DNA from: Basidiobolus meristosporus CBS 931.73 | Taxonomy: Eukaryota; Fungi; Basidiobolomycota | NCBI GenBank assembly: GCA_002104905.1 | Contig: MCFE01000421.1 | Coordinates: forward strand, 14,144 to 78,143 | Length of the DNA: 64,000 nt | Direction of reading: 5' to 3' | Shown here: in pieces, positions 20,046-64,000 of the stretch | Layout: each line of letters opens with the position of its first letter | Position numbering within the stretch: position 1 is the first letter of the stretch | Notes under the pieces: model-generated | What the model saw: only the letters and a program-made list of their open reading frames with translations | The model's database searches: none | Told to the model about the DNA's origin: nothing | Position numbers and translations under genes: made by a program

Positions 20046-20393
20046 TGTTGTAAAAATTCGTAATTCCACCTAAATATTCACTTAACTTAGTCACTTGGAT
20101 CATTACCCACAAATCTTAGAGAATACTGACCAAATTCCTTGTTGGGATTTACTTCGAATACTTTCACCAAAACATCAGGTACCCAGAACATGAAAATTGG
20201 ATAAGTTGTCCAAGCAGCCCCAAACTTTGAACACATGTTCTTGGGACCTTCTTCAACCTATTCTACGTGTTTTTTACTCCAAGACCATGTGAAAGTATAA
20301 ATACTACTTTTACATTCAATAAATCATTAAGTGAAACCACATAATCTACTTGCTTTCCCAATCACTTCCAATATCTCTAAGACTCTCACAATA
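20046..20393 (+). mobile_element. Solo LTR (no matching TSD)
   Basis: TGTTGTAAAAATTCG...CTCTCACAATA, colinear with the family LTR; flanks CTCGG and GTGCA. Confidence 0.92.
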
Positions 20394-21462: not shown

Positions 21463-22593
21463 ATGTTCACCGATAAGCGTCAGTGGAGAAGTCTGGACAC
21501 TGGGTTTAAGATTCCGTATCATGCGATCGTTGACGATGCTCAGCTGGAGCATCTCTCGGCCATTTCCTCCACTTCCAGTAGCTCCTCGAGCTCTTCCTTC
21601 GGCACATCCATACCACAAAGGTTCATTTTCAACGCAACCAAGACATCCCAACCGAAAAAACCTCGACAAAACCGCTTGAGTGAGCTGCCCCTTTTCGCTG
21701 CGCTAAGGAAGCGCAAGGCTCAACAATCCTTGAAAACGCTCTACGGCCCACTATCCATCGTCTCCTCCACCAGCTCTGGAAGCATGGTTTACAAAAGCTG
21801 CTCGCCACAGAATGGGCAGCTCCACGCGATCAAGGTGTTCCGCTTTCGTTATACTTACGAGACTCACCGGGAGTATTGCCTCAACATCAGCAATGAAATC
21901 TACATTGCCACCTCACTGAAGCACGAGAATATCATTCGAATGGTGGATGTTTTGGAGGAAAATGGGCGGCTGTATCAAGTCATGGAGTACTGCCCCTACG
22001 ACCTATTCACGGTATTTGAAAAGCTGAGCCCCACAGACAGCCAAGTCAAACAGTATTTCGTGGAGCTGGTGCATGGCGTTGCATATCTTCACCATCGGGG
22101 AGTGGCTCACCGTGATCTCAAGTTGGAGAATCTATGTATTGACCAACAGGGACACTTGAAGATCATAGACTTTGAGTTCGCCACCCTCTTCCGGAGCTCG
22201 TCCAACTCGAAGGAAACTCATGTCACGGGTGTCTTCGGCTCCAATACTTACATTGCCCCGGAGGTTTGGGCACGGGACTCGTACGACCCTTCTAAGGATG
22301 ATGTGTGGGCTGTGGGCATCCTCTTTGTAGGTATGATAACCCGTAAGTTTCCTTGGCAAAGGGCCATTCCCGATGACCCGAGTTTTCGCCTCTTCTTGGA
22401 ATCCTGGGAGTCTATACGGCTATTCGATTATTGTCCTCCAGAGTCCATCCCACTGCTGAAACGCCTACTGGAAGTTGAGCCGGACCACAGAGCAACGATC
22501 CAAGATATACTATGCGACCCATGGTTTCAGTCGTTGGAGGCGGAGGTACAGAGTCAAGCCTCTGGCTGTTCACCAGTTCAACCGTGCCTGTAA
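21463..22593 (+). CDS. Ser/Thr protein kinase of the fungal HAL/NPR1/Hrk1-like type, 376 aa, intronless
   Basis: HAIK Lys, NE alphaC Glu, HRDLKLEN, GSNTYIAPE, DVWAVG, FPW; DFE in place of DFG. Confidence 0.88.
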   Translation: MFTDKRQWRSLDTGFKIPYHAIVDDAQLEHLSAISSTSSSSSSSSFGTSIPQRFIFNATKTSQPKKPRQNRLSELPLFAALRKRKAQQSLKTLYGPLSIVSSTSSGSMVYKSCSPQNGQLHAIKVFRFRYTYETHREYCLNISNEIYIATSLKHENIIRMVDVLEENGRLYQVMEYCPYDLFTVFEKLSPTDSQVKQYFVELVHGVAYLHHRGVAHRDLKLENLCIDQQGHLKIIDFEFATLFRSSSNSKETHVTGVFGSNTYIAPEVWARDSYDPSKDDVWAVGILFVGMITRKFPWQRAIPDDPSFRLFLESWESIRLFDYCPPESIPLLKRLLEVEPDHRATIQDILCDPWFQSLEAEVQSQASGCSPVQPCL

Positions 22594-24099
22594 TTACCTA
22601 GTTAATTTTGCTTCTCCACCATCTCTGTTGTCTATAACAAAACCCAGCCCCATGACTGGATTGCGGTGGGTGTCACCCTGGAAAGGGATATCCCCATCTA
22701 GCTTCAAAATACCTGGGGCGCATCCTGTTCATCTGATCCGTATCTATAATCGCTCCATCCAGCATGCTCTTCTGGAAAAGGTGCCTTAGTCTCTGTACAT
22801 AACGCTCACACCCCATCACACCCCATCACCAATTCCGTTCAGCAGCTACCGATTTCTAATGAAATAAATGGCTCCAGTGAACCGATACAACGGTTGGTCC
22901 TTTCGCACTATCAAAAGCTTCAATCTCCCCTGGTCGTCTGGCCTCCGTTGTGGATCCCAATCCTGAATCGTGTAACATTACATGTGATATATGTGCAGTG
23001 CTTTTGCCAGCGCTTTTACCAAAGCTTGCTTTGTCACATGCGGCTATCATTGATCCTGCGATAAACACATGATACCACTGTTTCCTTGTATGGCAAAGTC
23101 ATTGGGACTGGTATGCATCTTGATGTCTACGTTGCGGTTCAAGGATTTTCCCGTCTATCTGAACAGGTGTCATGATAGTGGGAATTAAATGGCGACTTTG
23201 TTCATGAATGAGGATGCCGCGATAAGCAATTTCTACCGGTTACACAGGTTATGTTTCTACCGGTGTCTTGTGCTAAGCTAAATCCAGGGCAATTCACTTT
23301 ACCATATTAATATATGGGCGACAATAATTAGTGATTCGATTACCATACTTGGCTTAGTGCTACCAAGGCCTAGTACAGTCCAGTTTGTTATCTAAAGGCG
23401 GGTCTGAGAGGTCCAGAAATGCGATTGGTGAGCCACTGGTATGTCGCATGATAGATAAGCGCTTCGCTACAAAAGTACGTATACATGTATGTATATGTAA
23501 ATCATTGTGCCATCAATGAACTAGTATTATAGATATGGAAATGGCAGAACGAGCAGGCCGGGCGAACCAAGTAGGGAGGGAAGGTTTGGGATGCTTGGAG
23601 AATGTGAGTTTTCACTGTGGGGTAACTAGGCATTTGACCATGTTTATAAAAATTTGCAAAGCAGACCAAAGGAGTCTAATAGAAAGCCATGGAAAATAGG
23701 CACTATTCAGTTTTCGGTATTTCCCCCATTTCGAGCAGTTGGAAATATATATAAAGTCATTACGAATACAAGATTAGCAAACTTTAAGCTGAATATGGGT
23801 AGAGATTGAACGTACAAACGAATTTAATCTATGGCAAGCGCAATATTCACTCATATACCCCAACAGAATTTTCTGACAGATACTATCCAAACACCACATG
23901 TAAATCAGTAAAACTTTCGATGTTGAAAAAAAATTACAATTAGAGGCCATATTAAAATGAGGTTTTCATACACCAGATTGGCCCACCTCTGCCCCTCATC
24001 TTAGGCAATAAGCTACACCTCAAAATTTTTGAGTGCAGTACTGTTGTGATGCCGTGCAAATATGGCTGAAGTACCTGCCAGAACAGAAATTGATCTAAG

Positions 24100-24397
24100 C
24101 ATGAAATGTGCATGCCGCATTCTCATAAGAGCCTTGGATTTACTAGAGTTGGAAAAGGTACTACCGGTGGTGTGCAAAGTTTGAAGTATTTTGGATGGCT
24201 TTGCAAAATATTGTATACTGAGTACCTGACATTCTAGTTTAAATGTTCCAAGAAAATCCTGATAGAAAATTTGGTCAAGCATTACTTCAAGCTGTGAAGT
24301 TAATGTCAGTCTTTTTGGTGAGTGTCTTGGAGATATTGCAAGTATTAGGGAGAACAAATCAATTAGGCAGTTATCACTTGATGTTCATTGAATATAG
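24100..24397 (-). mobile_element. Degenerate LTR relics
   Basis: GTGTGCAAAGTTTG (~24171) and GTCTTGGAGATATTGCAAG...GGGAGAACAAA (~24324) match the reverse complement of the LTR. Confidence 0.65.
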
Positions 24398-24729
24398 TGT
24401 TGTAAAAATTTGGAATTCCACCTAAATATTCACCTAACTTGGTCACTTAGATCATTACCTTCAAATCCTAGAGAATACTGACCAAATTCCCTGTCGGGAT
24501 TTACTTAGAATATTTACCCAGAACATGAAAATTAGATAAGTTGTCCAGACAGCCCCAAACTTTGCACACATGTTCTTGGGACCTTCCTTAACCTATTCTA
24601 CGTGTTTGTAATGCCAAGACCATGTAAAAGTATAAATACTACTTTTACATTCAATAAATCATTAAGTGAAAACCACATAATCTACTTGTTCTCCCAATCA
24701 CTTCCAATATCTCCAAGACTCTTACAACA
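24398..24729 (+). mobile_element. Solo LTR with a small internal deletion (no matching TSD)
   Basis: TGTTGTAAAAATTTGG...CTCTTACAACA, 332 bp; flanks TATAG and GTTAC. Confidence 0.93.
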
Positions 24730-25521
24730 GTTACAACTTGCAGTATCAGAAGTTGTAGTCATCTTGAGAATAAGTAGTCATATATCTTAGAAGGTGCTGA
24801 GCCTGAGTAATCCTCTTACCAAACATGGTAACAGGCAGTTCACTGACTCCAAATATATTTGTACTTGAAATATTGACTGAAAAATACCAGCAGTATACTA
24901 TAGGAAATCCAATTTTGATATTTTCATAGGGTAAATCTCAAACTAACCATTAAGTACTTACTCAGCAGGTTTTTAGACTTCTACCTGGACTCTCATAACG
25001 CATTTGGAATAGTCCTAATTCACACTAGGTGGTTTGCCAGGTTGGCAACACTCCTTTCCTAAGCCCTTTGTATTTTGATTGACTGAATTACATTTCCTAT
25101 ACCGAGCAATATATTGTGTGGCTGAATAATGGGCCTAACAAGGGCTTACTGGATCTGTTGGACGTTGTGGGGCCCCAAGTTAGTCTGTACTTCGCTAGCA
25201 TCCATTCAAATGCATAAAAATATCCATCTGTTGTGCCGTAAGTAGCGTTATCATCTTGCTCTCACAGTGTCACCAATCAACCATGCAAGATCCATGGCAC
25301 AACCGCCGCATGATTCCTAGCAGATAACCTACTGAAGGAGTAAAAATTCTTTCCATCCAACAGCCAATCACAATCCACCCATCGACACTATAATCACATT
25401 GACCTGGAAAAAGACTACATTTCGATGAGGTGGACCATATTTGTTGGCTGATTCACAGAAACCGCCAGCTCGAAGTATTTCCTAGTCGTAAGCATACCCG
25501 TTATCGAAACCACCAGGAACC

Positions 25522-44670: not shown

Positions 44671-45749
44671 GGGTTCGCATCGATACTGCTCTCGGCCTCA
44701 TTCTGTACGGGACTTGGTTTATATACTCATTTTAGCCGCCCCAGGTGTATGTTTAGTTCGAGTTTGCCAAATATTTGTATATAGTAATAGGTTGTACGCA
44801 ATAAATCATATTTTCGGTAGCTTTTTGTTCGGCTTTTGCCACCTACACATGGTGAATACATACTATTCGCGAATCACATGATCGCGAACTCTGGGGTCTA
44901 CCAGTTGGCTTTGTATTAGAGGGAAAACTTGAAGCTAAGTCCTGACTATGCTTAATTCTTTATATTTAGTAGGTGAATATTACGCTGCAAACAAAGATAC
45001 TTCGACAGGTGGAGTTTCACTCAGCGAGGAGTATGCAACTGCAATTTAGGCGGATTTACATCGATGAGGATCATTTCAAGTAACCGCTGATCAATGGAAA
45101 CAGGGTCTAGCTCATTAATTTGACTAGGCATCAGTCATATATTGCTGAATTCCCTTGGTTGTAAGGCACAAATTTAGCAGGGGGGAAAGTCACCAGCTTT
45201 GTGAAATCTTAATTTTTACCAAGTCGTGACATATAAACTCAAGTCAAAATAAAGAAGCCAACCAAGACTTGTTCAATCTCTTGAATGAATAATCTAAATT
45301 AAACTTTGTTTTTTTGTAAGTGTTTTGGAGATTTCTGAAGTGATTGGGAGGACAAGTAGATTATGGGGGTTTCACTCAATAATTTATTGAACTTAAAAGT
45401 AGTATTTATACTTTTGCATGATCTTAGCAATACACACATGTAGAATAAACTCAAGAAGGTCCCAAGAATATGTGTGCAAAGCTTGTGACTGTTTAGGCTG
45501 TTGTAAAAATTCGTATTTTCCACCTAAATATTCACCTAACTTAGTCACTTAGATCATCACCTTCAAATCCTAGAGAATACTGACCAAATTCCTTGTCGGG
45601 ATTTACTTAGAATATTTTCACCAAAATACCAGGTACCCAGAACATGAAAATTCTCAAAGTTGTCCAAACAGCCCCAAACTTTGCACACATGTTCTTGGGA
45701 CCTTCCTTAACCTATTCTACGTGTTTGTAGTGCCAAGACCATGTAAAAG

Positions 45750-45777
45750 TATAAATACTACTTTTACATTCAATAAA
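45750..45777 (+). promoter_or_regulatory. LTR TATA box (TATAAATA 45750-45757) and poly(A) signal (AATAAA 45772-45777)
   Basis: Both motifs recur at the same spacing in the family LTR copies. Confidence 0.6.
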
Positions 45778-45848
45778 TCATTAAGTGAAAACCACATAAT
45801 CTACTTGTTCTCCCAATCACTTCCAATATCTCCAAGACTCTTACAACA

Positions 45849-45860
45849 GGTTATGAGCCC
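45849..45860 (+). promoter_or_regulatory. Primer binding site for a half-molecule tRNAi-Met
   Basis: GGTTATGAGCCC directly after the LTR, the type used by Ty5 and Drosophila copia. Confidence 0.85.
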
Positions 45861-48800
45861 CGAGCTGTCACTCTCTGCAATGTCTACTACTGCTATTACT
45901 GGAATTTTTCCCTCTGCTGAAAAGTTGGATGGATCTAACTACCAAGTGTGGAAGGTGAAGATGAAGATGCTGCTGCAAGAAAGAGGCCTTTGGGATATTG
46001 TCATGGGAGAAGAATGCCCTCCTAAAAACGTGGGAGAGGAAGCCTTAAAGTACCAGAAGAAAGAACAAAGTGCCTTTAACTGCATTTGCCTTAATGTCAA
46101 GGACAAATTGCTAATTCAATGCTCAAGAGCAAAAATGGCAAAAAATGCCTGGAAAGCATTAGAAGACACCTACCAGTCATGTTCAGCTGCCAAGAAAATG
46201 TATCTGAGAAGAAAATTCTTTACTACAAAGATGCTGCCAGGAGAAGAAATGAAAAATCTAATTAACAGAATTACCCTGCTGGTAGATGAGATGGAATCTG
46301 TGGGCGTACCAACTACTGATGAGGATGTGATAGTTACCATCCTGAATAGCCTGACAGACGAGTTTCAGGGCCTTGTATCAGCCCTAGAGTCCAGAACTGA
46401 AGATTTGACCTTAAATTACGTATATGGAAGGCTCCTGGATGAAGAATTAAGAAAATCAAGCGCCAATAAGAAGGAAGAAGAAAATGCTTTAATAAGCAAT
46501 GATAACCAACAAAGGAGGTACCCAAGACCCTACAAAGGCAACAGCAACCTATTTTGCAACTACTGCAAAAGGAAAGGACACACATCAGACCGGTGTTTCA
46601 AAAAGAGAGATTATCAGCAAAAGAAGCCTGAATATGGAAATGCTGTAACAACTGAAGATAGACTATTCATATCTGCACTAAATATGACCACAAACAAGGA
46701 TTCTCAGACGTGGTATATTGACTCTGGAGCTTCTCAACACTTTACACACCAAAAAGAACTTTTTACCCAATATCAAGAAATTCCAATTAAGAAGGTTTTC
46801 ATGGGTGACGATAGAACACTTGATGCAGTGGGAGAAGGAACTATCCAAGTAAACCTTAGAAGCAGTGAAGGAAGCCATACACTGACCTTTAAAGAAGTAC
46901 TCTATGTACCAGAAATAGCCAAGAACCTACTCTCTGTAAGCAAGGCCACAGCAGAAGGACTCAGTTTCAGTTTTGACAATTCTGGATGCAGGATCACTGA
47001 TCAAAATGGTGCCCATATTGCTTCGGGCATCAGAGATCAGAACCTATACAAGTTGACTTATATTCCATCATATCTGGAAGCCAATATAAGTAACTTAAAT
47101 GAAGAAACACCAATGCTTTGGCACAGGAGATTTGGACACATCAATTTTGATTATTTGCGTAAAATGATCAAAGATCAGCTAATTTCTGGAGTGAAAATTG
47201 ATCCCCCAGCTAATTTGGAGCACTGTGAAGCCTGCATATATGGGAAACAAGCCAGACAACCGTTCAAGAGCTCTGGGTTAATCAAAACTAAGAAAAAATT
47301 AGATCTAATTCACTCAGATCTGTGTGGACCTATGCAAAATTTATCCTTAGGCGGGATGAAGTATTTAATCACTTTTATTGATGATTATACAAGATACACA
47401 TGGGTCTACTTCATGGAGAGAAAGGAAGAAGCTCTGTCTAAGCTCAGGGAGTTTAAAGCCATGGTGGAGAGAGAAACTGGTGAAAAAATCAAGAAAATAC
47501 GCTCTGACAATGGTGGAGAATATACCTCAAAACTCTTCATCCATTTCTGCAAAATTCATGGGATAAAGCAAGAGACTACTGTACCATACTCCCCACAGCA
47601 AAATGGAGTAGCAGAACGAGCTAACAGATCAATAATTGATATGGCAAGATCTATGATCCATGATCAAAAATTATCCTATGATTTTTGGGCGGAATCAGTT
47701 GCCACTGCTGTATATCTTAAAAATAGGAGTTATAACAGAATACTTCGTGATTCTACTCCATTTGAAGCATGGTATGGATACAGACCAAGTGCAGAACATC
47801 TAAGAATATTTGGGTGTACAGCATATGCCAAAAAACTGGCCGGAAATCAGTCAAAATTTGAGCCAAAAAGTGTAAAATGCATATTTTTGGGCTACTGCAA
47901 TGAGAGTAAGGCATACAGACTCTACAATACCGAAGCAAAGAAGCTGATCAAGTCCAGGGATGTGTTGTTTGATGAAAATTCAAAATTTTCACAAAAAATG
48001 ACATCAGATGATGACAAAAATTTGATCTCAAGTCCACCAATTGTCAGGATTGAATCAGAGCAAAACAATGAAAATTTTTTCACTCCAGAGGACTCTACAA
48101 CCGTGGTTCAGCCAGAATCAGTGCCCAGGAATATCCCAGAAGTGATCATTCCAGTATCAAATGCCCGGAGATCCAATCGGACAAGAAATAGCCCAAATTA
48201 CTATATCAATGAGGGTACAAACTTAGCCTATGCCTATTCAGTCCATGTTGATGAACCCCAGACTGTAAAAGAGGCCCTAAATAGCCCTCAGACGAAGTTT
48301 TGGAGATCTGCAATGACTGAGGAATATCAGGCCCTGATGGAAAATCAAACTTGGGACTTAGTCAAATTACCAATCAACCGAAAATCAATTGGATGCAGAT
48401 GGGTCTTTAAGACAAAATACAAGGCTGATGGTACAATTGAAAGATACAAAGCAAGACTTGTAGCCAAAGGTTACTCTCAAACAAAAGGACTTGACTATAC
48501 TGAGACCTTTGCACCGGTAGCCAAGTTTAATTCCATCAGATTAATATTGGCTATTGCAGCCAAATATAAGTTTTTTATTCATCAAATGGATGTAAAAACT
48601 GCATTTTTGAATGGAGAACTTGATGAGGACGTGTATATGGACCAGCCTGATGGGTTTGTTGACCAAGATAACCCCCATTTGGTCTGCAAGCTTAAAAAGT
48701 CACTATATGGTCTCAAACAATCACCGAGAGCCTGGAATTGCAAGATAGATTCTTATTTGGAATCTTTGAGTTTCAAAAGGAGTAATGCTGACTATAGTAT

Positions 48801-49824
48801 ATACTATAAGCCAGATAGAGCAAATCCAGTTCTATTAGCTCTATATGTGGATGATCTTATTATAGCCGCCAATAACCTAGAAACATTGGAAGAGACTAAA
48901 TCCAGCCTATCTAAGGAGTTCAAGATGTCCGATCTAGGAGAACTTAGTTACTACTTAGGGATTAAGTTCTCCATAGACAGAAGTACCCAGACTATTACCC
49001 TAAGTCAATCCAAGTATATTCAAGATATACTAAAGAAGTACAAAATGGAAGACTGTAAACCGGCAGCTACCCCAATGGAGACAAACCTTAACTTGGTCAA
49101 AACTCAACCAAATCAAGAGAGCTTGGTGCCATCTGAAAGCCCTGACTTTCCTTATCAATCTATGGTCGGCAGTCTGATGTATATCATGCTTGGAACACGT
49201 CCAGATATCTCATATTCAGTGGGAGTTGTCAGCCAACATAATCAGAATTATGGATCTGATCATATTGCAGCAGTTAAGCGGATTTTTAGATACCTAAAAG
49301 GAACTGCTGATATCTGCTTAAGATACACTTATAAGGATTCAGAACAGGATCTTGTGGGATACTCTGATGCTGATTGGGGACGAAATTTAGAAGACAGAAG
49401 ATCCACCACAGGATACACCTTTCTTTACTGTAAAGGAGCCATCTCATGGAATTCAAGAAAGCAACCAACCGTAGCACTTTCTACTACAGAGGCAGAGTAT
49501 ATGGCAGCCTGTGAAGCTACAAAAGAAGCAATGTGGTTAAGAAAGCTCTTTACAGATTTAGGCCTATGTCAAAAAACGCCCATTACTTTATTTCAAGATA
49601 ATCAAGGATGTATACAATTAGGTAGAAATCCAACTTTTCATGCTAGAACCAAGCACATAGATATTAGACATCATTTCATACGTGAAGCTATAGAGAATAA
49701 CTTAGTTAGCTTAGTTTACTGTCCTACAGATGAAATGATTGCAGACATATTTACCAAACCATTAGCTAGAGACAAGTTTGAATATTTTAGGTCAAAATTA
49801 GGACTAGTCAGTATGAACATTTAG
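45853..49824 (+). CDS. Copia gag-pol polyprotein, 1323 aa (Gag, CCHC, PR DSGA, IN HHCC/DDE, RT YVDD, RNase H)
   Basis: Uninterrupted single ORF in PR-IN-RT-RH order; the ATG lies inside the PBS. Confidence 0.97.
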   Translation: MSPELSLSAMSTTAITGIFPSAEKLDGSNYQVWKVKMKMLLQERGLWDIVMGEECPPKNVGEEALKYQKKEQSAFNCICLNVKDKLLIQCSRAKMAKNAWKALEDTYQSCSAAKKMYLRRKFFTTKMLPGEEMKNLINRITLLVDEMESVGVPTTDEDVIVTILNSLTDEFQGLVSALESRTEDLTLNYVYGRLLDEELRKSSANKKEEENALISNDNQQRRYPRPYKGNSNLFCNYCKRKGHTSDRCFKKRDYQQKKPEYGNAVTTEDRLFISALNMTTNKDSQTWYIDSGASQHFTHQKELFTQYQEIPIKKVFMGDDRTLDAVGEGTIQVNLRSSEGSHTLTFKEVLYVPEIAKNLLSVSKATAEGLSFSFDNSGCRITDQNGAHIASGIRDQNLYKLTYIPSYLEANISNLNEETPMLWHRRFGHINFDYLRKMIKDQLISGVKIDPPANLEHCEACIYGKQARQPFKSSGLIKTKKKLDLIHSDLCGPMQNLSLGGMKYLITFIDDYTRYTWVYFMERKEEALSKLREFKAMVERETGEKIKKIRSDNGGEYTSKLFIHFCKIHGIKQETTVPYSPQQNGVAERANRSIIDMARSMIHDQKLSYDFWAESVATAVYLKNRSYNRILRDSTPFEAWYGYRPSAEHLRIFGCTAYAKKLAGNQSKFEPKSVKCIFLGYCNESKAYRLYNTEAKKLIKSRDVLFDENSKFSQKMTSDDDKNLISSPPIVRIESEQNNENFFTPEDSTTVVQPESVPRNIPEVIIPVSNARRSNRTRNSPNYYINEGTNLAYAYSVHVDEPQTVKEALNSPQTKFWRSAMTEEYQALMENQTWDLVKLPINRKSIGCRWVFKTKYKADGTIERYKARLVAKGYSQTKGLDYTETFAPVAKFNSIRLILAIAAKYKFFIHQMDVKTAFLNGELDEDVYMDQPDGFVDQDNPHLVCKLKKSLYGLKQSPRAWNCKIDSYLESLSFKRSNADYSIYYKPDRANPVLLALYVDDLIIAANNLETLEETKSSLSKEFKMSDLGELSYYLGIKFSIDRSTQTITLSQSKYIQDILKKYKMEDCKPAATPMETNLNLVKTQPNQESLVPSESPDFPYQSMVGSLMYIMLGTRPDISYSVGVVSQHNQNYGSDHIAAVKRIFRYLKGTADICLRYTYKDSEQDLVGYSDADWGRNLEDRRSTTGYTFLYCKGAISWNSRKQPTVALSTTEAEYMAACEATKEAMWLRKLFTDLGLCQKTPITLFQDNQGCIQLGRNPTFHARTKHIDIRHHFIREAIENNLVSLVYCPTDEMIADIFTKPLARDKFEYFRSKLGLVSMNI

Positions 49825-50411
49825 CTGAGTGGGAGTGTTGTAAAAATTCGTATTTTCCACCTAAATATTCACCTAACTTAGTCACTTAGATCATCACCTT
49901 CAAATCCTAGAGAATACTGACCAAATTCCTTGTCGGGATTTACTTAGAATATTTTCACCAAAATACCAGGTACCCAGAACATGAAAATTCTCAAAGTTGT
50001 CCAAACAGCCCCAAACTTTGCACACATGTTCTTGGGACCTTCCTTAACCTATTCTACGTGTTTGTAGTGCCAAGACCATGTAAAAGTATAAATACTACTT
50101 TTACATTCAATAAATCATTAAGTGAAAACCACATAATCTACTTGTTCTCCCAATCACTTCCAATATCTCCAAGACTCTTACAACATAGGCAACATTGAGA
50201 AATTTCATGTTCTGGGTACCCAATAACTTAGTGAAAATATTTTGAGTAAATCCCAACAGGGAACCTAGTCAGAGTTCTCCAAGATTTACAGGTAATGACC
50301 AAAGTGACTAAGCTGTATGAATATTTAGTTGTAATTACAAGTTTTACAACACTTGCATTCAAACAAATTTTCATATCAACTAGTACTTATTGTGATCTAA
50401 AATATCCAAGT

Positions 50412-54351: not shown

Positions 54352-54700
54352 TGTTGTAAAAATTTGTAATTCCACCTAAATATTCACCTAACTTAGTCAC
54401 TTAGATCATTGACCTCAAATCCTAGAGAATACTGACCAAATTCCTTGTCGGGATTTACTTAGAATATTTTCACCAAAATACCAGGTACCCAGAACATGAA
54501 AATTTGATAAGTTGTCCAAACAGCTCCAAACTTTGCACACATGTTCTTGGGACCTCCCTTAACCTATTCTACGTGTTTTTAATGCCAAGACCATGTAAAA
54601 GTATAGATACTACTTTTACATTCAATAAATCATTAAGTGAAAACCACATAATCTACTTGCTTTCCCAATCACTTCCAATATCTCCAAGACTCTTACAACA
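54352..54700 (+). mobile_element. Solo LTR with perfect TSD
   Basis: 349 bp TG...CA; CAAGA at 54347-54351 and 54701-54705. Confidence 0.96.
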
Positions 54701-55739
54701 CAAGATACAGGAGAAATTTGAAAGAATTGGCAAGATTTTACAAAGTATCCACTACCCAAAGTTCCTCTCATGGGCTGCAATCAATATTCATACTCATATG
54801 CAACAACACAAATGCAAGGACTGGATGAGCTGAATATGTACTTATTCAAGTGGACTTCTGAAGTCCTTTCTACCCAGAGTATATTGGAAGCCTTAGAAGT
54901 CATATATTCACATTGTAGAAGTATTCATGCAGAAGTGTATCATCAATGCCAAATTGACACATCTACAGCTTTTATGCAAGAAGTTTGTGACAGGATCTGA
55001 GCACCTACACTACAAGCATAAAGCTGAATATGAGAATCTTTGCTGCTACTGTATCTATTTCCTACTCCATCTTGATTGGTTTGGCAGAATATTGGGTCTT
55101 GCTTTAACATTGGGGAGTTTTCTATGGCCCAGATGTGTAGGGAGATAGGGGGATGGGTCAAGTTATAGGTACTGTCATATTCCAATCTCATCATGACTAT
55201 TACCTTAAGGTCTGTCATTAACATAATAAGTTGTCCTATCAAGGACAGCCCAGAAGAGTTGGAAAATACTGAGAATGAAAGAGCGCATGGAGATACTTAT
55301 GCCTTTGAGATTAAGAAGCTAAGCAGCCCAAATGCATGGCTAATAAGATAAGTAATGCAAAGTTGGGTTGGGTGCAACAAGCAACTAATTTTTAGCAGGA
55401 CAACTCTGCCAGTGTATTCCAGGCTTCTCTTGGTCCCAAGCCAGTTTACACATCATTCAGTACAGATTTCACATAAACAAGAGCCCAAGCACACCTATAA
55501 TGGGCAATAGAGTCCAGCAGGGAGAAGGAATATATTGCTCAAAAACCAAGAAGTTCTTTACATATAATCAGGAGGTACTAATAGCACAAGTGGTGGCAAC
55601 CAAGCATATGTTTGCACAATGTAAATGTTACCATGAATACAAGGTATATGGCAACTTTGCAAGTATCACACTAAAAAGTCATAAAGTTGAGGTGATAGAA
55701 GTATGTCAATTGCTGCAGGTGTGTACATATGTCGAGGTT

Positions 55740-58110
55740 AATAAACAGGAGGCAATAGTTTTTATTTGATTCAAACTATATATAAAATACTCAAGGCAGT
55801 GGTGGGTAAGCAAATAAAGAGCAGTGATTCAACAGTGGTAATATGAATGGTGCAAGAGGAGGTAGAACATGGAAATACCAATTGGTACATTGTTATGGTA
55901 GCACTATACAGTACTAGCTGTAGGCTGCTGTACTCCCATAATAATGCCAACAGAGGTTTGCAATGAGATTGTCAGAACACTGTCAAGTTTCTTGCCATAT
56001 AAGGCAATTAGATGTCTTGTTAGATATTTGGACATATTATAGCTTGTAGGAAGCTAAGGAATTGGGTGTTTAGCAAAAAGCAAAATTGATACATTGCAAT
56101 ATTTAAATATTTTGGAGTGAGAGCAAAGCATACATTTAGACATCAAAAAATTTAGCATATTGGCAGGTATATACAGGGGAAAGTTATATATAGGAGAAAG
56201 CATCAGAATAGGTAAAATAGTCAAGATACTGATCAATGCGCAATGTCATCACATAAGAAGATGCCAACCAAGAGAAATATCTCTGGAGGATTATTAGAGT
56301 ACATAAAGCAAGAAAAGTACTATTCTGAGCAATTAAAGTAAGACTGAGAATGTTCAACAGTAACCATGTCCTACCTCTGTCATCATGGTTGGAATCTTAG
56401 TGCCAGATGGTGCTATAGAGTGCCAGAATGATCTGGGACTATTAGCTGGCTGTCATTATGCAGCACTTTCTAGCAGAACACAACTTATGCCTGTGTTATT
56501 ATCACTACAATTTCTGTTTCACCCATGGCATCTGTATGCTGCACAAGTTTCAGACTACTAATCCCTGAGTTGTTGGATGTACTGTGGCTGCTAGAGCCTT
56601 CCAGAACCCTCTTAGAGTATAATTAGCTCATAGCAATAACATTATTAATCTACTGATGCATGATATCTTCTAGAATCTTCACATTAGTAATAGACCTGGC
56701 AATCAGGAAATGTATATAGAGGAAGTCAATCCCTTCTCAATAAGTCATCCCTTCCACCAGCATATTTTTCCCTTATTGATTAGGGATTGATCACTGCTCC
56801 TACCTTCAACAATTTAACCTCAGACCTGCCATCAAGGAGCTTTTCAGGATAGTGCATAACACACACAGAGGCCTTCAGAGACACTTAGAGCACCTAGGAA
56901 GCTAGAGAAGCAGGAGCTTTTACCATAGCTTTGTATTGATAGATGCAGCAGCAGTTTAGGCCCAGAGGATATTGCACTCATCAAGCACATGATACACCTT
57001 GGGATGTGCAGCTTCTTCCAGGAGCATCTCAACACCATCACAACATCAACCATGGAGAAAAGTGCTATCTCAGTTGGAAAAATATAAAAGGCTCTGAGCT
57101 TAGTATATTGCTGGTGATATGGAATATAACAAATTTGTAGCCAGATTCCAAATAACTAGCCTTTGGGTGAGCCTTAGATGACAATGATGCAGTCCCAAGA
57201 TGATACTCTAGGTATCCAGTGCTTCAACTATTCACTCATTGCTTGGCCAAACACTACATGATATTCCCAATTTATGTTGCTTGCTCTATCTGAAGAAGTA
57301 CTTGTTTGAGCATCAACCCACTTAGTTTGGTGCCCAAAGGATAATTTGCTACAGGGATTGTTGTAAAGGTATATTGTGATTGATGCACTACTTGGCAGTG
57401 GCAATACCAAGTTTCTATACAAGTATATTCAAAATAATCTACAATAGCAAATTTTATGCATATTGCCTCTTGTAATACTAACCTCTTACCTTGCTAATCA
57501 TTTTGGGATGCCAATTTATTAAGAATCCAGGACTTGGGACAATCCTATCCCTAGGCAGCTCCTGGAAATATGCTGAGATAGTGCTCTACATATTTCCTTT
57601 TGATGAAAACAATGATATATCACATTAGATGATGCTGAAATGACATGTGTGCATACCATAAGTGCAACTAATCAAACAAGGCTTTGTGAGGTATACAAAA
57701 CACTGGGACTCTTGATAAGTAGTTCCAAGATTGCAATTTGATGCAATACAAACTTAAATACCAGAATATAGTGTTTTATGGCACTTCAAATGGTGTGCGC
57801 AGCCTAGATTATCAATCGACCTTGCCAAGCAGTGTATTCAATTGCCACACATGGAGAAAGATTTGATGGTATTATGATGGCATTTGTGCAGACATCTGTT
57901 GGCATTGCAATGACAATAAAGCAGCCTACAGCTAGTACTGCATAATGCTAGCATATCAATTTACCAAATGATATTTCCTTATGCTACCTCCCCTTGCACC
58001 ATTCATATACAGTGGTGTAGAATCACCCAACTTATTGCATTACCCACTACTACAATGGTAATTTGACATATAATATGAATCAAAGAAAAATATGGCCTCC
58101 AGCTTACTGT
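55740..58110. repeat. Diverged inverted repeat pair (~55740-56030 and ~57820-58110)
   Basis: CAGTACTAGCTGTAGGCTGCT (~55909) versus AGCAGCCTACAGCTAGTACTG (~57920), plus a shared ATATGAATGGTGCAAGRGGAGGTAG. Confidence 0.75.
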
Positions 58111-58310
58111 TGTATCCAAGAAAAAAGTGCATAAAACACATGTATGATTTATCTGACCCACATGGACATTTGACAGTAGAGTTGCAGAGTTAACAGAGTG
58201 TGACAGGACTAATATCATGGGGATTTAAGTCTGGTAATGATCTAGTACATAGCTAGTTTTGACTATGAAGGCAACAGAGTTGGTTTGCTATGCAGGCTAA
58301 GGTTGGTTCA

Positions 58311-59411
58311 GGGGGAGACATTCACCAACAGGTGAAATCTTTATATCAGCTAAAACAAAGAAGCCAGCACTACTGTTGTAGCTTTGACACAAGAGTGTGT
58401 AGCTGAGGGGAATATGCAGGTACATTAATCAGGAGAGAGGATAGTTCTTCAGTGCTCAAAATATTGTTCAGTGGGAAGGGGGGTAGCAACAGGGGTAAGA
58501 ATGATCAGTCAACAGCATTGATAAGGAGAATATGATAAGGATTAGTATTAGTCATAAATGGAGTGTGCTGATTCAAATATCACTGCCAAATATCTGTCAA
58601 GTTCTTCAGATAGGCCAGCTTGGGTTTATCTGACTGCAAATTATAATGAGCAGACTTCTGGACATCAGAATCTTCCAGTATAATTTTCCAGCAGGAGACA
58701 GGTGTAGTGTGGTGTGTTCTCTTCCAGGCCTTGATCAGTAGGTTGTTGCAGTGGAGAATTCTGAGATCAAATCTGGTTCTAAGGTAGGGAAGTTTGATCA
58801 CATAGGGCTTAAGCCCAAAAGCCCAAGAATAGCAAGTGTATAGGGGCACTCAAACATATGAGGGACAAATGAGGTCATGCACCAGACTGCAAGCTTGTCA
58901 AGCATAGTGTAGTCTCTGGAAGTAAGAGAGAGCAGTGGTAAGCCAAATTCCAGGACAGGGAAGACAAACTGCTTTAGCAGAAGGAGGCAGCTGGGAGCTG
59001 AAGTTGTAGGAGGAGTAACAGCCAGTAGCTTGTGGAGTGCCTGTCTTGCCAGGATAATTCTCTTCTTCAGGTGTGCTCCAGAGTCTAGTCCAGTAGGAAG
59101 GAAAGGAAAGCCAAGATATGTAGCAGAAACCTGAGCAGGTAGAGTGGAGTTCTCCAAGTTGATGGGAGAGCCCAAAGGTACTGTCTTTGCAATGGAAAGC
59201 TGGAGATTATTCTTCTGCAGATACTGGTGGATGGTCTGGGAGTCTTGTTGCACATTGGAGGAGGATATTCTGATGTCATCAGCAAAGAGAGTAACCAGGC
59301 AGTCAGCTGAGAGTCTTGGGAAATCATTCAGGAAGATGGCAAACAGTATAGGACCAAGCACAGAGCCTTGAACCACTCCATTAGGAACTGAGAACACTGG
59401 TGATTGCTCAC
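58311..59411 (-). mobile_element. 5'-truncated, frameshifted proximal copy of the telomeric LINE (3' ~1.1 kb)
   Basis: Aligns to 59434-60540 at an offset of ~1128 bp; ORF 58798..59397 carries QGSVLGP/FADD; same 3' terminus. Confidence 0.95.
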
Positions 59412-59442
59412 TTAGGGTAGGGTTAGAGGGTTAGGGGGGGGG
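59412..59442 (+). repeat. Interstitial variant telomeric repeats plus G9 between the LINE copies
   Basis: TTAGGG TAGGG TTAGAGGG TTA GGGGGGGGG. Confidence 0.92.
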
Positions 59443-59496
59443 AGACAGTCACCAACAGGTGAAATCTTTATTTCAGTTGAAACAAAGAAGCCAGCG

Positions 59497-62265
59497 CTAC
59501 TGTTGTAGCTTTGATACAAGAGTGTGTAGCTGAGGGGAATTTGTAGGTAAGTTAATAAGAAGTGATGATAGTTCTTCTGTGCTCAAGATACTGTTCAGTG
59601 GGAAGGGGGGTAGCAAGAGAGGTAAGAATGACTTGTGAACAACATTAATGAGGGGAATGTGATAAGGATTGATATTCATCATAAAGGGAGTGTGCTGCTG
59701 CAGATATTGCTGCCAAAGGTCTGTCAAGTACTTCAGGTAGGCCAGCTTGGGGCTTTCTGACTGCAGAATAAATTCAGCAAACTTCTTGACTTCAGGATCT
59801 CCAAGTATAGTTCTCCAGCAGGAGTCAGGTGTAGTGTGGTGTGTTCTCTTCCAGGCCTTAATCAGTGGGTTGTTGCAGTTGTGAAGTCTGAGGTATAAGC
59901 TGGTTCTAAGGTAGAGAAGTCTGATCTTATAGGGCATGAACCCAAAAGCACCAAGAATAGCATGTCTGTAGGGGCATTCAGGCAAATGAGGCACCAAGGA
60001 GGTAATGCACCATACTGCAAACTTGTCAAGCTTAGTGCAGTCTCTAGAAGTAAGAGAGAGAAGTGGTAAGCCAAATTCCAGGACAGGGAAGACAAACTGC
60101 TTGAGTAGAAGGAGGCAGCTGGGAGCTGAAGTTGTAGGAGGAGTAACAGCCAGTAGCTTGTGGAGTGCCTGTCTTGCCAGGATAATTCTCTTCTTCAGGT
60201 GTGCTCCAGAGTCTAGTCCAGTAGGAAGGAAAGGAAAGCCAAGATATATAGCAGAAACCTGAGCAGGTAGAGTGGAGTTCTCCAAGTTGATGGGAGAGCC
60301 CAAAGGTACTGTCTTTGCAATGGAAAGCTGGAGATTATTCTTCTGCAGATACTGGTGGATGGTCTGGGAGTCTTGTTGCACATTGGAGGAGGATATTCTG
60401 ATGTCATCAGCAAAGAGAGTAACCAGGCAGTCAGCTGAGAGTCTTGGGAAATCATTCAGGAAGATGGCAAACAGTATAGGACCAAGCACAGAGCCTTGAA
60501 CTACTCCATTAGGATCTGAGAACACAGCTGATTGCTCACTTGGGTGCAGAATTCTTGCGTGTGGATCCAGAAACAGAGACCTGACAAGGAGGGTGAGAGA
60601 GGTACTGGAGAAGCATTGCAACTTGGACCAAAGCAGATTTCTGTCAACTGAATCAAAGGCCTTAGTAATATCAAACAGAACTGAGGGATACTTGCACTGG
60701 AGAGAGTGATCATGGCTAAGTATAACTGCATATTCAAAGGAGAGGCCAGGAACAAAGCCAAACGGTGCAGGATGAAACTTGAGGGAGTCAGAGTAGAGCT
60801 CCTGAGCAAGCAGAAGCTCAAACACCTTTCTGCAGGTGGGCAGCAGAGATATTGGCCTGTAGGAGCTAGGATCCAGGTGCTTTCCTTTGCCCTTGTAGAG
60901 TGGCAGAACATTTGCAAAGGACCATTCCTCAGGAGTAGAAAGCTGGGCTGAGCATTGCTGAAACAGTGGAAGCAGAAGAGCAGAGATGGCCTTGGTACTA
61001 GTCTTCAGAAGCTCATAAGAGATTGTGTCCACACCTGGAGCAGTACAGTTGGGAAGCCTCTTGAGCACATTATGGATTCTCCTTTGATCAAGTGCAAGTG
61101 GGATGGGCAGAGTCTTGAAGTCAGGATGAAAGCCAGGAGTTGAGTACTGCTTTGTAGAGAAGAAGATGTTAGCCAGCTGTTCTGTTGAAGGTAACTTCCT
61201 GGAAGAGGGCCTCATTGCCCTGTAGAGTCTTGATACTGTTCTTGTTATAGAGTTGGAAGATTGCAGAGGCAAAGAACTCATAATATGATCCCAGAGCTGA
61301 GTGTGCAGAGTGTGGTGAATTGCCTTGGAGTGGTGTATGGCTGTCAGGAGGAGTTTCTCTGTTTTTGGGTTAGGGAAACTCAGGTAGCTTTGTTGCAGGG
61401 CTGAAACAATGGATTCCCATTTTCTTGAGGTCACAGCAGTAGTCTTGCATGGCAGTGAGAGGGAGGCAGACACCAGAATCAGATGCTTCACAAAGAGCCA
61501 GGCATAGTTGAGATCATCTGGCAGAGAAAGTAGCAAGCTGGCAAGCTTCAAGTAGTTGCCAAAGTCTTTCTTCTGATTCTTGGTAGCTTTGTGGGTGAGC
61601 ACAGTAAGTTTTGGCAGCTTCTTCTTCACAACTGGTTGCATAGAAAGGGACCAGGCTGGGTGGTCAGAGGCTCTCAAGGATCCTAGCTCAGCTCCAGAGA
61701 ATTGCTTAACTTCATTCACAAAGTAGAGGGCAGCAGCAGAAGGGCAGATCCAGTCAACACATCTTTTCTCAGATTGAGCACCTAGTGCTAGCAGATGGCT
61801 TTCTCTCAGGAAGTTCAGTAGGAATGTAGACCTTGGCTTCATTCTTGCAGTCAGGGTAGTCTTGTTCTCAGGATGGGGAATGTTGAGATCTCCAAGCAAG
61901 ATAATAGGTGTTGATATAGATTGCTGGTATTGCTGAACTTTCTGGCAAACAACTTGCACTTCCTGAAGGGCAAGACTTGGAGGCAGATAGCAGAGCACCA
62001 GACTGATAGTTGGCAACTGGAGAGCAGCACAGTAAGTGGAGTAAAGAGGAACACAGAGCTGAGGAGTATTGATGGTAGAAGAGATGAAGCAGATAGAGGA
62101 GGTATTCTTTGTTCTAGGAGTAGAAAAGCAATATAGATTAGTCAATAGTATAGAGGGTAGCTGGACATCAATCAAACACAGGAGGGAAAATCTTGAAAGA
62201 AGTCTCTCTAGAGTTGGTCTTGATGGCTGTATGCTGTTGCAGTTAAGCAACAGAACTTCAGGTAG
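59497..62265 (-). CDS. ORF2: APE/EEP endonuclease + LINE reverse transcriptase; no N-terminal ATG, no RNase H, no C-terminal CCHC
   Basis: EN: LNCN, YLPP, GDLN, VDWI, SDH. RT: APGVD, YRPISLL, FGFVPG, DITKAFDSV, QGSVLGPILF, FADD, YLG. Confidence 0.95.
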   Translation of the reverse strand, partial: LPEVLLLNCNSIQPSRPTLERLLSRFSLLCLIDVQLPSILLTNLYCFSTPRTKNTSSICFISSTINTPQLCVPLYSTYCAALQLPTISLVLCYLPPSLALQEVQVVCQKVQQYQQSISTPIILLGDLNIPHPENKTTLTARMKPRSTFLLNFLRESHLLALGAQSEKRCVDWICPSAAALYFVNEVKQFSGAELGSLRASDHPAWSLSMQPVVKKKLPKLTVLTHKATKNQKKDFGNYLKLASLLLSLPDDLNYAWLFVKHLILVSASLSLPCKTTAVTSRKWESIVSALQQSYLSFPNPKTEKLLLTAIHHSKAIHHTLHTQLWDHIMSSLPLQSSNSITRTVSRLYRAMRPSSRKLPSTEQLANIFFSTKQYSTPGFHPDFKTLPIPLALDQRRIHNVLKRLPNCTAPGVDTISYELLKTSTKAISALLLPLFQQCSAQLSTPEEWSFANVLPLYKGKGKHLDPSSYRPISLLPTCRKVFELLLAQELYSDSLKFHPAPFGFVPGLSFEYAVILSHDHSLQCKYPSVLFDITKAFDSVDRNLLWSKLQCFSSTSLTLLVRSLFLDPHARILHPSEQSAVFSDPNGVVQGSVLGPILFAIFLNDFPRLSADCLVTLFADDIRISSSNVQQDSQTIHQYLQKNNLQLSIAKTVPLGSPINLENSTLPAQVSAIYLGFPFLPTGLDSGAHLKKRIILARQALHKLLAVTPPTTSAPSCLLLLKQFVFPVLEFGLPLLSLTSRDCTKLDKFAVWCITSLVPHLPECPYRHAILGAFGFMPYKIRLLYLRTSLYLRLHNCNNPLIKAWKRTHHTTPDSCWRTILGDPEVKKFAEFILQSESPKLAYLKYLTDLWQQYLQQHTPFMMNINPYHIPLINVVHKSFLPLLLPPFPLNSILSTEELSSLLINLPTNSPQLHTLVSKLQQ

Positions 62266-63708
62266 TCAGGCAGAGGTTGTAGCTTCTTCAGAGGCAGCAT
62301 TGACAATGTGACCAGCAGAGTCCCAGAGCTCTTCAAATGGTGCATCACTTAAGTCAGCAAGGAGGGAAATGGCATGGTTCTTGAGGAAGTATGCCACATC
62401 ATAGGAGGGGGCTTGTCTCTTGATGGCAGCAAAGAAAGACAGAATGGCAACATGGGCTGGAGGCTTGTTGAACAGTAGAGAGTCAGAGGATTCAGATTCT
62501 TCAGGCACTATCTTGAAGTCAGTTTTCAGCCAGTTAAGGTTCTTCTCCACAAAGGCAACAAATGGGTCAGCAATGTTTTGGTCTAGGATAACCTCCAGAA
62601 TCTTCCCTTTTCTCCAGGCCAGGTTGACAATTCTTGAGAGCTGAATATTGCATGCCTTGAGTGCTTTCCTGATGTTGGAAATGGGAGTCCAGGGAACTTG
62701 CTTCAAGTACACCACAGTCCAGGTAGAAGCTGGTGGTAGGTTTGCTGGGGGCTTGTAAGTCCTTCTGTGTTGCAATGGAGCTGCAGTAGTCAGATTGGAG
62801 TCCACATTCTCAGTAGAGGGTTTTCTTGATGTGTCTTGCTGAATGGTACTGGAGCTGGATGTGCTGATAATTCTTGCTAGACCCTTGCCTGCATAAGTCT
62901 GAGGAATAGCTGAGGTGACTGTAGAGGTGGTGGCAGCTGGTGCAGGTGGAGAGGCAGAAACTGAAGCAGGAACTGAGGTCACCTGGGAGAAGGCAGTAGA
63001 AGCAGGTTTTCTGGGAGGAACAGAGTTCACTATCCAGTTGTTCTGTAAAACACTGGAGTAGCTTTTCTGTGGAACAGGATCTTGCTCTTGAACAGGAGCA
63101 GAAGCAGGAGGCTGGGGCTGAGCAGTAGTGGTAAGGCAGTGGCACTCCAAGGAAGCTTTTTGCAAGGCATCTGTGGCAGTTTTCAGGGCAGTATTGGCAG
63201 CCTCTAAATCAGCAATTCTCTTCTCAATTGCAAGGAATCTCTGAAGAAATGCATCAGTAGAAGTGCTGGTATCTGGGAGAGCAGTGGCAGGAATAGAGTC
63301 CATTGACAGTGGGCTTCTTGGAGGTAAGGAAAGTGGACTGGCAGATTCAGGCACAAAAGGAGATATCCTGGCAGGAGGAGAAGGAGTATCCAAGGCAGTA
63401 ACAGAGGCAATTCTTGTTGGTGAAGCAGCAGCAGGGGAGGCAAGCCTGTTCAGAAACTGGGCAGGAGATAGTGCTTGAGGAGAGGGAGTCTTCAGCTTGC
63501 CAAGCATGTCTTCCATCAGAGTGATACCAATATTCCTGGTGCATTTGCAGAGAAAAGTAAGCTTCCTGAGTCTGCCAGCTCTTCCATTCCTTCTGATAGT
63601 TCCTTTGTTTCCACAGTTGGGGCAAGAAATCTTCTTGACAGACTTGTCAAAGCAATCAAGAACCTTCCTTTCAGGTGTAGTGGGCTCCTGTTGAGGTTTT
63701 GGTGGCAT
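62266..63708 (-). CDS. ORF1: 480-aa Gag-like protein (N-terminal CX2CX21CXC, coiled coil, Ser/Pro/Ala linker, C-terminal alpha/beta domain)
   Basis: ATG at 63708 (the track start at 63735 is TTG); IEKRIADLEAANTALKTATDAL heptads; lies directly upstream of ORF2. Confidence 0.85.
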   Translation of the reverse strand: MPPKPQQEPTTPERKVLDCFDKSVKKISCPNCGNKGTIRRNGRAGRLRKLTFLCKCTRNIGITLMEDMLGKLKTPSPQALSPAQFLNRLASPAAASPTRIASVTALDTPSPPARISPFVPESASPLSLPPRSPLSMDSIPATALPDTSTSTDAFLQRFLAIEKRIADLEAANTALKTATDALQKASLECHCLTTTAQPQPPASAPVQEQDPVPQKSYSSVLQNNWIVNSVPPRKPASTAFSQVTSVPASVSASPPAPAATTSTVTSAIPQTYAGKGLARIISTSSSSTIQQDTSRKPSTENVDSNLTTAAPLQHRRTYKPPANLPPASTWTVVYLKQVPWTPISNIRKALKACNIQLSRIVNLAWRKGKILEVILDQNIADPFVAFVEKNLNWLKTDFKIVPEESESSDSLLFNKPPAHVAILSFFAAIKRQAPSYDVAYFLKNHAISLLADLSDAPFEELWDSAGHIVNAASEEATTSA

Positions 63709-63817
63709 ATCCAGAGTTTCAGCTTCAAATTTCAATTTTTGAGATTTTTGGGTGATTTTTGATGGGCGGGATCAAAATTAGGGCTAGGGTTGCGCGCTGT
63801 GACTGCTTTTTACAATC

Positions 63818-63895
63818 TTAGGGTTAGGGTTAGGGTTAGGGTTAGGGCTAGGGTTAGGGTTAGGGTTAGGGTTAGGGTTAGGGTTAGGGTTAGGG

Positions 63896-63936
<41 letters not shown>

Positions 63937-64000
63937 GGTTAGGGTTAGGGTTAGGGTTAGGGTTAGGGTTAGGGTTAGGGTTAGGGTTAGGGTTAGGGTT
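63818..64000 (+). repeat. Telomere, (TTAGGG)n
   Basis: ~30 tandem units running to the window end, G-strand pointing outward; variants CTAGGG (63848) and TTTAGGG (63914). Confidence 0.99.

Follow-up and report, generated by a model that had tools for sequence, protein, structure and literature searches.

One-way stacks of a predicted APE-type LINE beneath telomeric caps in the fungus Basidiobolus meristosporus

Introduction

How does a chromosome end that bears ordinary telomerase-type repeats come to carry retrotransposons directly beneath them? The question is raised by a 64,000-nt stretch of the fungus Basidiobolus meristosporus CBS 931.73 (assembly GCA_002104905.1, contig MCFE01000421.1, forward-strand positions 14,144 to 78,143), hereafter the window, numbered from its first letter. 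The last 5.7 kb of the contig consist of an array of a long interspersed nuclear element (LINE), on which no long terminal direct repeats (LTRs) were found in a search of the window, and of a (TTAGGG)n cap. A preliminary description of the same letters had proposed here a head-to-tail array of an APE-type LINE, interleaved with telomerase repeats and forming the chromosome tip, and had recognised no such system as described in early-diverging fungi.

Telomere-specialised retrotransposons are the main natural link of mobile elements to telomerase, and are known from a handful of lineages, among them flies, silkworm and some fungi. What is new here is an APE-type LINE of two open reading frames (ORFs), with a telomeric-repeat tail, in terminal stacks under a telomerase cap. 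Like the preliminary description, we know of no precedent; the full-text literature that we searched holds no report of such an element in Basidiobolus or in other early-diverging fungi. The element would add an early-diverging fungal lineage to the hosts of such retrotransposons, the fungal cases reported so far all belonging to the CRE clade.

One-way stacks at chromosome ends

The array in the window contains two same-direction copies of one two-ORF LINE (58316-63817, minus strand), both with the 3' end towards the centromere, and the distal copy lies beneath the cap; both points had been described correctly. The G-rich strand of the cap lies on the plus strand and reads 5' to 3' up to the contig end, as expected of a true right-hand telomere. 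The distal copy has lost part of its 5' untranslated region (UTR), as judged against 21 other copies, and also lacks a 66-nt in-frame segment of ORF1 that is present in most others (coordinates in Table 1). The proximal copy is 91-92% identical to 59443-60540 of the distal copy. Its frame is broken near 58810, and tblastn returns it as two pieces in different frames; judged from its sequence, it is the older of the two.

We searched the window's own genome assembly (89.5 Mb, 1366 contigs) at the DNA level and scored the best 31 of 774 candidates. The 71 scored matches share, without exception, the strand of the window copies, and 30 contigs contain at least 31 additional near-full-length copies with 98-99% identity. 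The sequence (TTAGGG)6 occurs 6728 times forward against 68 times reverse in the assembly, and 99% of the tracts are G-strand-forward at contig right ends. As telomere-bearing contigs are thus written telomere-right, the single strand shared by all copies amounts to a single polarity relative to the chromosome end. This is the constant polarity that the preliminary description had anticipated, and the one expected of cDNA primed on a G-strand 3'-OH. Judged by the number of (TTAGGG)6 tracts, the assembled chromosome ends must also be very numerous.

When 30 fetched loci were mapped against one natural copy, all 30 proved to be one-way stacks. Within them, every LINE fragment starts with position 1 of the 3' end, truncation being confined to the 5' end, and short telomere-like pieces separate the fragments. 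No interrupted element resumes distal of an insert at any of these loci, which rules out nested insertion into older copies. At half of the loci (15/30) a terminal (TTAGGG)n tract lies within ~0.9 kb distal of the copy and runs to the end of the DNA; in three the contig ends inside the element, and in the other 12 further tailed elements follow. Every visible stack end is capped by 90-249 nt of (TTAGGG)n, which directly caps full-length 5' ends as well as variously truncated ones. Together, the shared polarity, the intact 3' ends, the absence of nesting and the terminal position show that copies were laid down outward from the chromosome end.

Identity to the reference copy is 88-98% for proximal fragments and 98-99% for the main or distal copies (91% against 98-99% in the window), and this apparent gradient of age along the stacks fits outward growth. 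Among the 30 copies, 26 have an ORF2 uninterrupted over 922 codons, and about 18 have both ORFs open. Because most copies keep open ORFs, the family is young and probably active.

Unitigs from two short-read DNA runs of one sample, which is perhaps the source of the window assembly, contain the same kind of head-to-tail joints. These joints lead back from variable internal element positions to 59436-59438, with 1-12 telomere-unit letters between; 12 of them are among those listed, with 53 more beyond these. The short-read joints indicate that head-to-tail junctions are not a product of long-read assembly, an artefact that the preliminary description had itself raised.

The 3' tail and its junctions

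We found no poly(A) at the 3' end of the element, either in the window or in the fetched genomic copies. The 3' end is formed by a conserved module, consisting of AAUAAA, a CACC-loop-GGUG hairpin, a short pyrimidine stretch, a run of five or six C (C5-6) and UAACCC. This module is kept in 13 sequences of several families, in which the stem is invariant and the loop variable, a pattern that fits a recognition element; the hairpin has no covariation support, its stem never varying in the 13 sequences. The same module is common to relatives at 58-79% ORF2 identity in contigs from other samples, a comparison that excludes the relatives L031 and L032, whose contigs end before the 3' tail or in adapter. 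Several other families stacked in the same genome likewise end in it. Because both the diverged relatives and the other families end in the same module, the telomere-like tail is evidently encoded by the element. The element RNA presumably ends as the genomic copies do, in the hairpin, the C run and one or more telomeric C-strand units (CCCCC-UAACCC). Examples of the module in other families of the same stacks are found in the fetched loci L005 (6060-6636), L008 (6174-6214), L012 (598-639), L016 (870-909) and L025 (1344-1383), and in others.

Our census of junctions comprised 44, of which 41 are distinct. On the G strand, 38 of the 41 distinct junctions read as ...TA, a run of five to seven G (G5-7) and the element. 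Telomere-like letters ahead of the G run have a median of 6, with at most 12 in 37 of the 41 and 22-41 in the remaining four; the 22-letter spacer of the window (59412-59433) is among the longer ones. The DNA upstream is mostly non-telomeric and derives from a truncated copy of the same LINE, from the 5' end of a tRNA-like short interspersed nuclear element (SINE), from another element or from sequence of other kinds. Given that the tail is conserved in diverged relatives, the telomere-like pieces that separate copies are mostly the element's own tail (C run and UAACCC), rather than interleaved telomerase tracts. The head of the tRNA-like SINE abuts LINE tails repeatedly (fetched loci L006, L008, L019, L020, L022 and L027, among others).

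These junctions modify the preliminary description in part. The one-way terminal array under a telomerase-type cap stands, but its interleaving with telomerase repeats does not hold for most of the pieces between copies, telomere-like letters numbering at least 22 in only 4 of the 41 junctions. For the 31-nt tract at 59412-59442 the description holds, with variant telomere units followed by nine G. The degenerate telomere proposed at 58297-58315 is mostly not telomeric: 58263-58299 belongs to a different dispersed repeat, and only 58307-58315 (TTCAGGGGG) corresponds to a decayed tail of the element.

Coding capacity and affinities of the element

The reverse transcriptase (RT) of ORF2 is recognised by Pfam as RVT_1 (E 8e-23), its best match among solved structures is human L1 ORF2p (1.3e-11), and its nearest RT relatives are all proteins that combine APE and RT. 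At the ORF2 N-terminus, Pfam endonuclease families including Exo_endo_phos_2 remain sub-threshold (21-23 bits against a cut-off of 27.4), and a family profile of this endonuclease (EN) region gave no match by sequence to solved structures in the PDB. We therefore rely on an AlphaFold model of the domain, built from a 12-row alignment (pLDDT 78, confident over residues 1-214). Foldseek matches the model to APE1 and TRAS1 EN at E 1.4e-9, and it superposes on TRAS1 EN, R1Bm EN and human APE1 with Z 20.7-21.0 and a root-mean-square deviation (rmsd) of 2.5-2.8 over ~195-200 residues (TRAS1 EN, Z 21.0, rmsd 2.8, 199 residues; APE1, Z 20.7). Since these three matches are tied, they establish the fold, and not the clade or a shared specificity. 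The model thus places the N-terminal domain of ORF2 in the APE (EEP) fold.

The EN motifs N, Y, GDxN, D and SDH are conserved when relatives down to 44-54% identity and remote LINEs are aligned, and the residues N8, Y93, D126, N128, D171, D201 and H202 are kept. The metal-binding Glu at the end of strand 2 is an Asp (D33) in all four family sequences that cover it. A Pfam scan of ORF2 revealed no RNase H domain, and in the family alignment the C-terminal 230 residues contain only two invariant Cys, with no CCHC pattern and no pattern of a restriction-enzyme-like endonuclease (REL).

A tree of 70 RT rows recovers the family as monophyletic (100/100), on a very long stem of 2.26 changes per site, and places it among unnamed APE LINEs. 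No labelled Tad1, L1, R1, Jockey or RTE sequence was found among the protein-search relatives, the cluster names, the Pfam-scanned neighbours or the rows of this tree. Taken together, the two ORFs, the RVT_1 domain and the predicted N-terminal fold identify the element as a two-ORF, APE-type non-LTR retrotransposon, in line with its preliminary assignment.

ORF1 contains an N-terminal CxxC...CxC zinc ribbon, a coiled coil (~63145-63270) and a conserved C-terminal domain of beta-alpha-beta-beta-alpha-beta order (~62299-62727). The window copy and the copy labelled C988 lack 22 in-frame residues of the coiled coil that most other copies have. A fold search with the C-terminal domain gave weak RRM or ferredoxin-like matches (best E 0.015); an L1-like architecture of coiled coil and RRM is a lead only.

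ORF1 and ORF2 lie in one frame across UGA-CU(A/C/U), with a 7-bp hairpin downstream. Of 30 genomic copies, 28 have this arrangement, as do four diverged relatives, and in one of the latter (L031) the hairpin shows a compensatory change from G:C to A:U. The shared frame and the conserved UGA and hairpin suggest that ORF2 is probably translated by readthrough, as an ORF1-ORF2 fusion. An Rfam search of 58000-64000 gave no match at E up to 1, and thus no hammerhead or HDV-like ribozyme.

End priming and its alternatives

The sequences themselves show the anatomy, orientation, terminal position, 3' tail, junction structure and intact ORFs; that priming takes place on the chromosome end, when it does so in relation to the loss of the telomere, what the APE domain does and whether the host gains are inferences. 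On balance we lean towards a telomere-specialised LINE, whose reverse transcription would be primed on eroded chromosome ends via the telomere-complementary tail, and be followed by re-capping by telomerase. At a chromosome end stripped of most or all of its TTAGGG, the ribonucleoprotein would engage the G-strand 3'-OH by way of the tail, which would pair with whatever G strand remains. The RT would then copy the RNA outward, so that the element would have its 3' end centromere-ward, with the antisense strand continuing the G strand. The 5' end may be trimmed by incomplete copying or by later erosion, and telomerase would add a normal (TTAGGG)n cap to the 5' end that remains. Repeated cycles would build one-way stacks, with the oldest copies innermost. 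End priming is favoured because the proximal spacers are about one unit long, which is the element's own tail, and lie beside non-telomeric DNA.

Several points weigh against this reading. The conserved EN motifs argue for a selected nuclease activity, which could cut telomeric DNA as in TRAS and SART elements, and some of the short spacers may have shrunk after insertion. The RNA 3' end is read from genomic copies alone, no RNA run containing this stretch having been found. The age gradient is partly a selection effect, the main copies having been picked for their high identity. Scoring of only the best 31 of 774 candidates leaves room for interstitial copies, and 12 of the 30 loci have no true chromosome end in view.

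In a TRAS-like route, the APE endonuclease would nick duplex TTAGGG at one set position in the G strand, the RNA tail with its C-strand-like sequence would pair with the nicked strand, and insertion would take place inside the telomere array. The predicted APE fold matches TRAS1 and R1Bm EN (Z 20.7-21.0), the catalytic motifs are conserved in diverged relatives, the orientation of the element is identical to that of TRAS, and a few junctions do have 22-41 telomere-like letters. We nevertheless regard this route as rather unlikely, since random nicking in tracts of 116-249 nt should give far longer proximal spacers, often of tens of letters, than those observed, 37 of the 41 junctions having at most 12 telomere-like letters proximally, about one unit of which is the element's own tail. 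The tie between TRAS1 and APE1 (Z 20.7) makes the structural match uninformative on shared specificity, and the metal-binding Glu of the APE fold is replaced by Asp in the family sequences covering it. Moreover, SART1Bm depends on three or more repeats and on a poly(A) tail (PMC7265360), and no poly(A) is present here. Spread of the stacks mostly by recombination between chromosome ends (break-induced replication, unequal exchange or segmental duplication), with retrotransposition rare or extinct, would agree with copies that are 98-99% alike. Subtelomeres commonly exchange sequence, and some junction types do recur, such as the same SINE head against a LINE tail at several loci. However, 41 of the 44 junctions are distinct, differing in truncation point and in upstream DNA, dozens more junction types occur in the short-read unitigs, and most copies have open ORFs; as recombination is unable to create new joints between a 5' truncation and a tail, we consider it an improbable main source of the stacks. 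An artefact of long-read assembly, in which reads of different repeat copies were chained together, is harder still to credit. The element is highly repeated, no single short-read unitig crosses the window's own copy-copy junction, and the nine-G run, the length of which may be a long-read homopolymer error, resembles such an error; yet the same architecture occurs independently on 30 other contigs, in short-read unitigs and in contigs of unrelated samples carrying diverged relatives.

A further reading is one that we hold only tentatively. In this telomerase-positive fungus the LINE could heal chromosome ends as a second system resembling telomerase, with the RNA tail as a built-in telomeric template and the RT extending repeat-less ends and leaving telomerase a new primer. 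This would make it a functioning intermediate between LINE and telomerase, kept by the host owing to its very many chromosome ends. The elements could equally be parasites of deprotected ends, and not a means of end maintenance for the host.

Comparison with known telomeric retrotransposons

TRAS1 and SART1 of Bombyx mori (R1 clade, APE-type) share with the Basidiobolus element two ORFs, an N-terminal APE-fold EN with an RT, and coexistence with telomerase-type repeats, and TRAS has the same orientation as the window element. ORF1 of TRAS and SART carries CCHC knuckles, in contrast to the Basidiobolus ORF1, which has an N-terminal zinc ribbon and no knuckles; the Basidiobolus ORF2 also lacks a conserved C-terminal CCHC. 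TRAS and SART have poly(A) tails and insert at a fixed nucleotide inside repeat arrays, with several repeats required (PMC7265360). The Basidiobolus tail, in contrast, is a telomeric C-strand unit, and the proximal spacers are about one unit long. We did not find fixed-site insertion with repeats on both sides, 37 of the 41 junctions having at most 12 such letters and lying beside non-telomeric DNA.

HeT-A, TART and TAHRE of Drosophila (Jockey clade) form one-way head-to-tail arrays at the extreme end of the chromosome, with their 3' ends centromere-ward and variable 5' truncation. They attach to ends without a specific target sequence, and TART and TAHRE keep an APE domain. The Basidiobolus element shares this one-way, head-to-tail terminal arrangement with the 3' end proximal. 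The Drosophila arrays have no telomerase repeats and have poly(A) junctions, whereas the Basidiobolus stacks have (TTAGGG)n caps and a telomere-unit tail. Replacement of telomerase repeats by elements is thus not what we observe, every visible stack end being capped.

Two further comparisons concern the tail and the use of chromosome ends as primers. Stringent-type LINEs, such as eel UnaL2, have a 3' stem-loop and a short repeat tail that is not poly(A). The 3' hairpin and short repeat tail of the Basidiobolus element resemble this module of RT recognition and priming, although the tail repeat of stringent-type LINEs is unrelated to the telomere. L1 is capable of endonuclease-independent insertion at dysfunctional telomeres, with deprotected telomeres as primers, which is an experimental condition and not a specialised lifestyle.

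Exposed G-rich overhangs are where the endonuclease-deficient Penelope-like elements Athena and Coprina attach, aided by 3' reverse-complement telomeric repeats (PMC8557442). Such repeats are also present in the Basidiobolus LINE, and the end-attachment mechanism of Athena and Coprina is the one that we propose here. They differ in having a telomerase-like RT, no endonuclease and hammerhead ribozyme motifs, whereas the RT of the Basidiobolus element groups with those of APE LINEs, an APE fold is predicted, and Rfam detects no ribozyme.

Among fungi, MoTeR, FoTeR and Cnl1 are CRE-clade elements with a single ORF, in which the RT is followed by a C-terminal REL (PMC12857005). Candidates from Malassezia are also counted among the known fungal telomere-associated, single-ORF, CRE-clade elements (PMC12857005; PMC10055393), and a survey of 2023 listed MoTeR1 as the sole fungal telomere-associated LINE (PMC10088271). 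MoTeR, FoTeR and Cnl1 resemble the Basidiobolus element in being fungal, restricted to chromosome ends, oriented with the 5' end terminus-ward, furnished with 5' tandem repeats and interleaved with telomere repeats (PMC12857005; PMC10055393). The Basidiobolus element differs from them in its two ORFs, in its predicted N-terminal APE fold and in its host, which belongs to a different fungal phylum.

Two features that have been seen separately elsewhere are therefore combined in Basidiobolus: ordinary two-ORF APE LINE machinery, and a 3' tail complementary to the telomere, of the kind described until now for Penelope-like elements without endonuclease. The host is culturable, with telomerase-type caps and many chromosome ends, and about half of the fetched copies have both ORFs open. 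The system opens direct tests of whether a LINE RT can be primed by a chromosome end, of the need for an endonuclease, and of how telomerase and retrotransposition share chromosome ends.

Feature coordinates, 5' end and base composition

The coordinates of the array are collected in Table 1. No LINE protein match and no tail module were found in 1-58250, the 58 kb proximal to the array, which rules out older stack layers deeper in the window.

Table 1. Features of the terminal LINE array, in window positions and ordered from the contig end inwards.
Feature	Positions	Strand	Remarks
(TTAGGG)n cap	63818-64000	+	183 nt, 30.3 units, 97% match; joined directly to cut 5' UTR
Distal copy	59443-63817	-	ORF1, single in-frame TGA, ORF2; near-full-length
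5' UTR remnant of distal copy	63709-63817	-	ends ~115 nt short of family 5' end
ORF1	62269-63708	-	480 codons from ATG at 63708
In-frame TGA between ORFs	62266-62268	-	
Candidate programmed readthrough site	62234-62268	-	UGA 62266-62268, CUA; 12 nt on, 7-bp hairpin 62253-62234
ORF2	59497-62265	-	922 codons, no ATG of its own; predicted APE fold ~61624-62265, RT core ~60301-60870
3' UTR of distal copy	59443-59496	-	AAUAAA 59472-59467; hairpin CACC-UGUU-GGUG 59461-59450
Nine-G run	59434-59442	+	C run at 3' end of distal element; 5-7 in other copies
Variant telomere-like units	59412-59433	+	22 letters, between cut 5' end of proximal copy and distal C/G run
Proximal copy	58316-59411	-	5'-truncated, ~1.1 kb, decayed; 3' UTR and last ~350 ORF2 codons
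Decayed 3' tail of proximal copy	58307-58315	+	TTCAGGGGG; TTAG5-6 in other copies

At their 5' end, full-length copies, which are ~4.5 kb long, bear 100-nt units in tandem, between one and at least eight per copy, as in the fetched loci L011 (6059-6753), L003 (6058-6185) and L027 (6057-6257). These units may be a repeated promoter that buffers terminal erosion. The 5' UTR additionally holds two telomere units (63778-63791 in the window; 5837-5848 in L002). Most copies have them in perfect form; the window copy departs from it by one letter. Were erosion to reach these units, an end ready for telomerase would be exposed. The diverged relatives L034 and L038 lack the motif.

Other dispersed repeats occur in the window in both orientations, at 1240-8555, 20045-24733, 45498-50186 and 54352-56016, and these same repeats are also found directly proximal to LINE stacks on other contigs.

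CpG is nearly absent from the LINE: the distal copy has 6 where 223 would be expected, and the proximal copy has 0 where the expectation is 51; the ratio of observed to expected CpG in the rest of the window is 0.38-0.64. Most of the few CpGs of the LINE lie in the 5' UTR. On the strand that is continuous with the telomeric G strand, the distal copy (59443-63817) has a GC skew of +0.245, against -0.003 in the flank. The same strand of the copy has 62 GGG against 9 CCC runs, and 13 against 0 two-tetrad G4-type motifs. A similar strand bias has been reported in other telomeric retroelements (PMC10088271).

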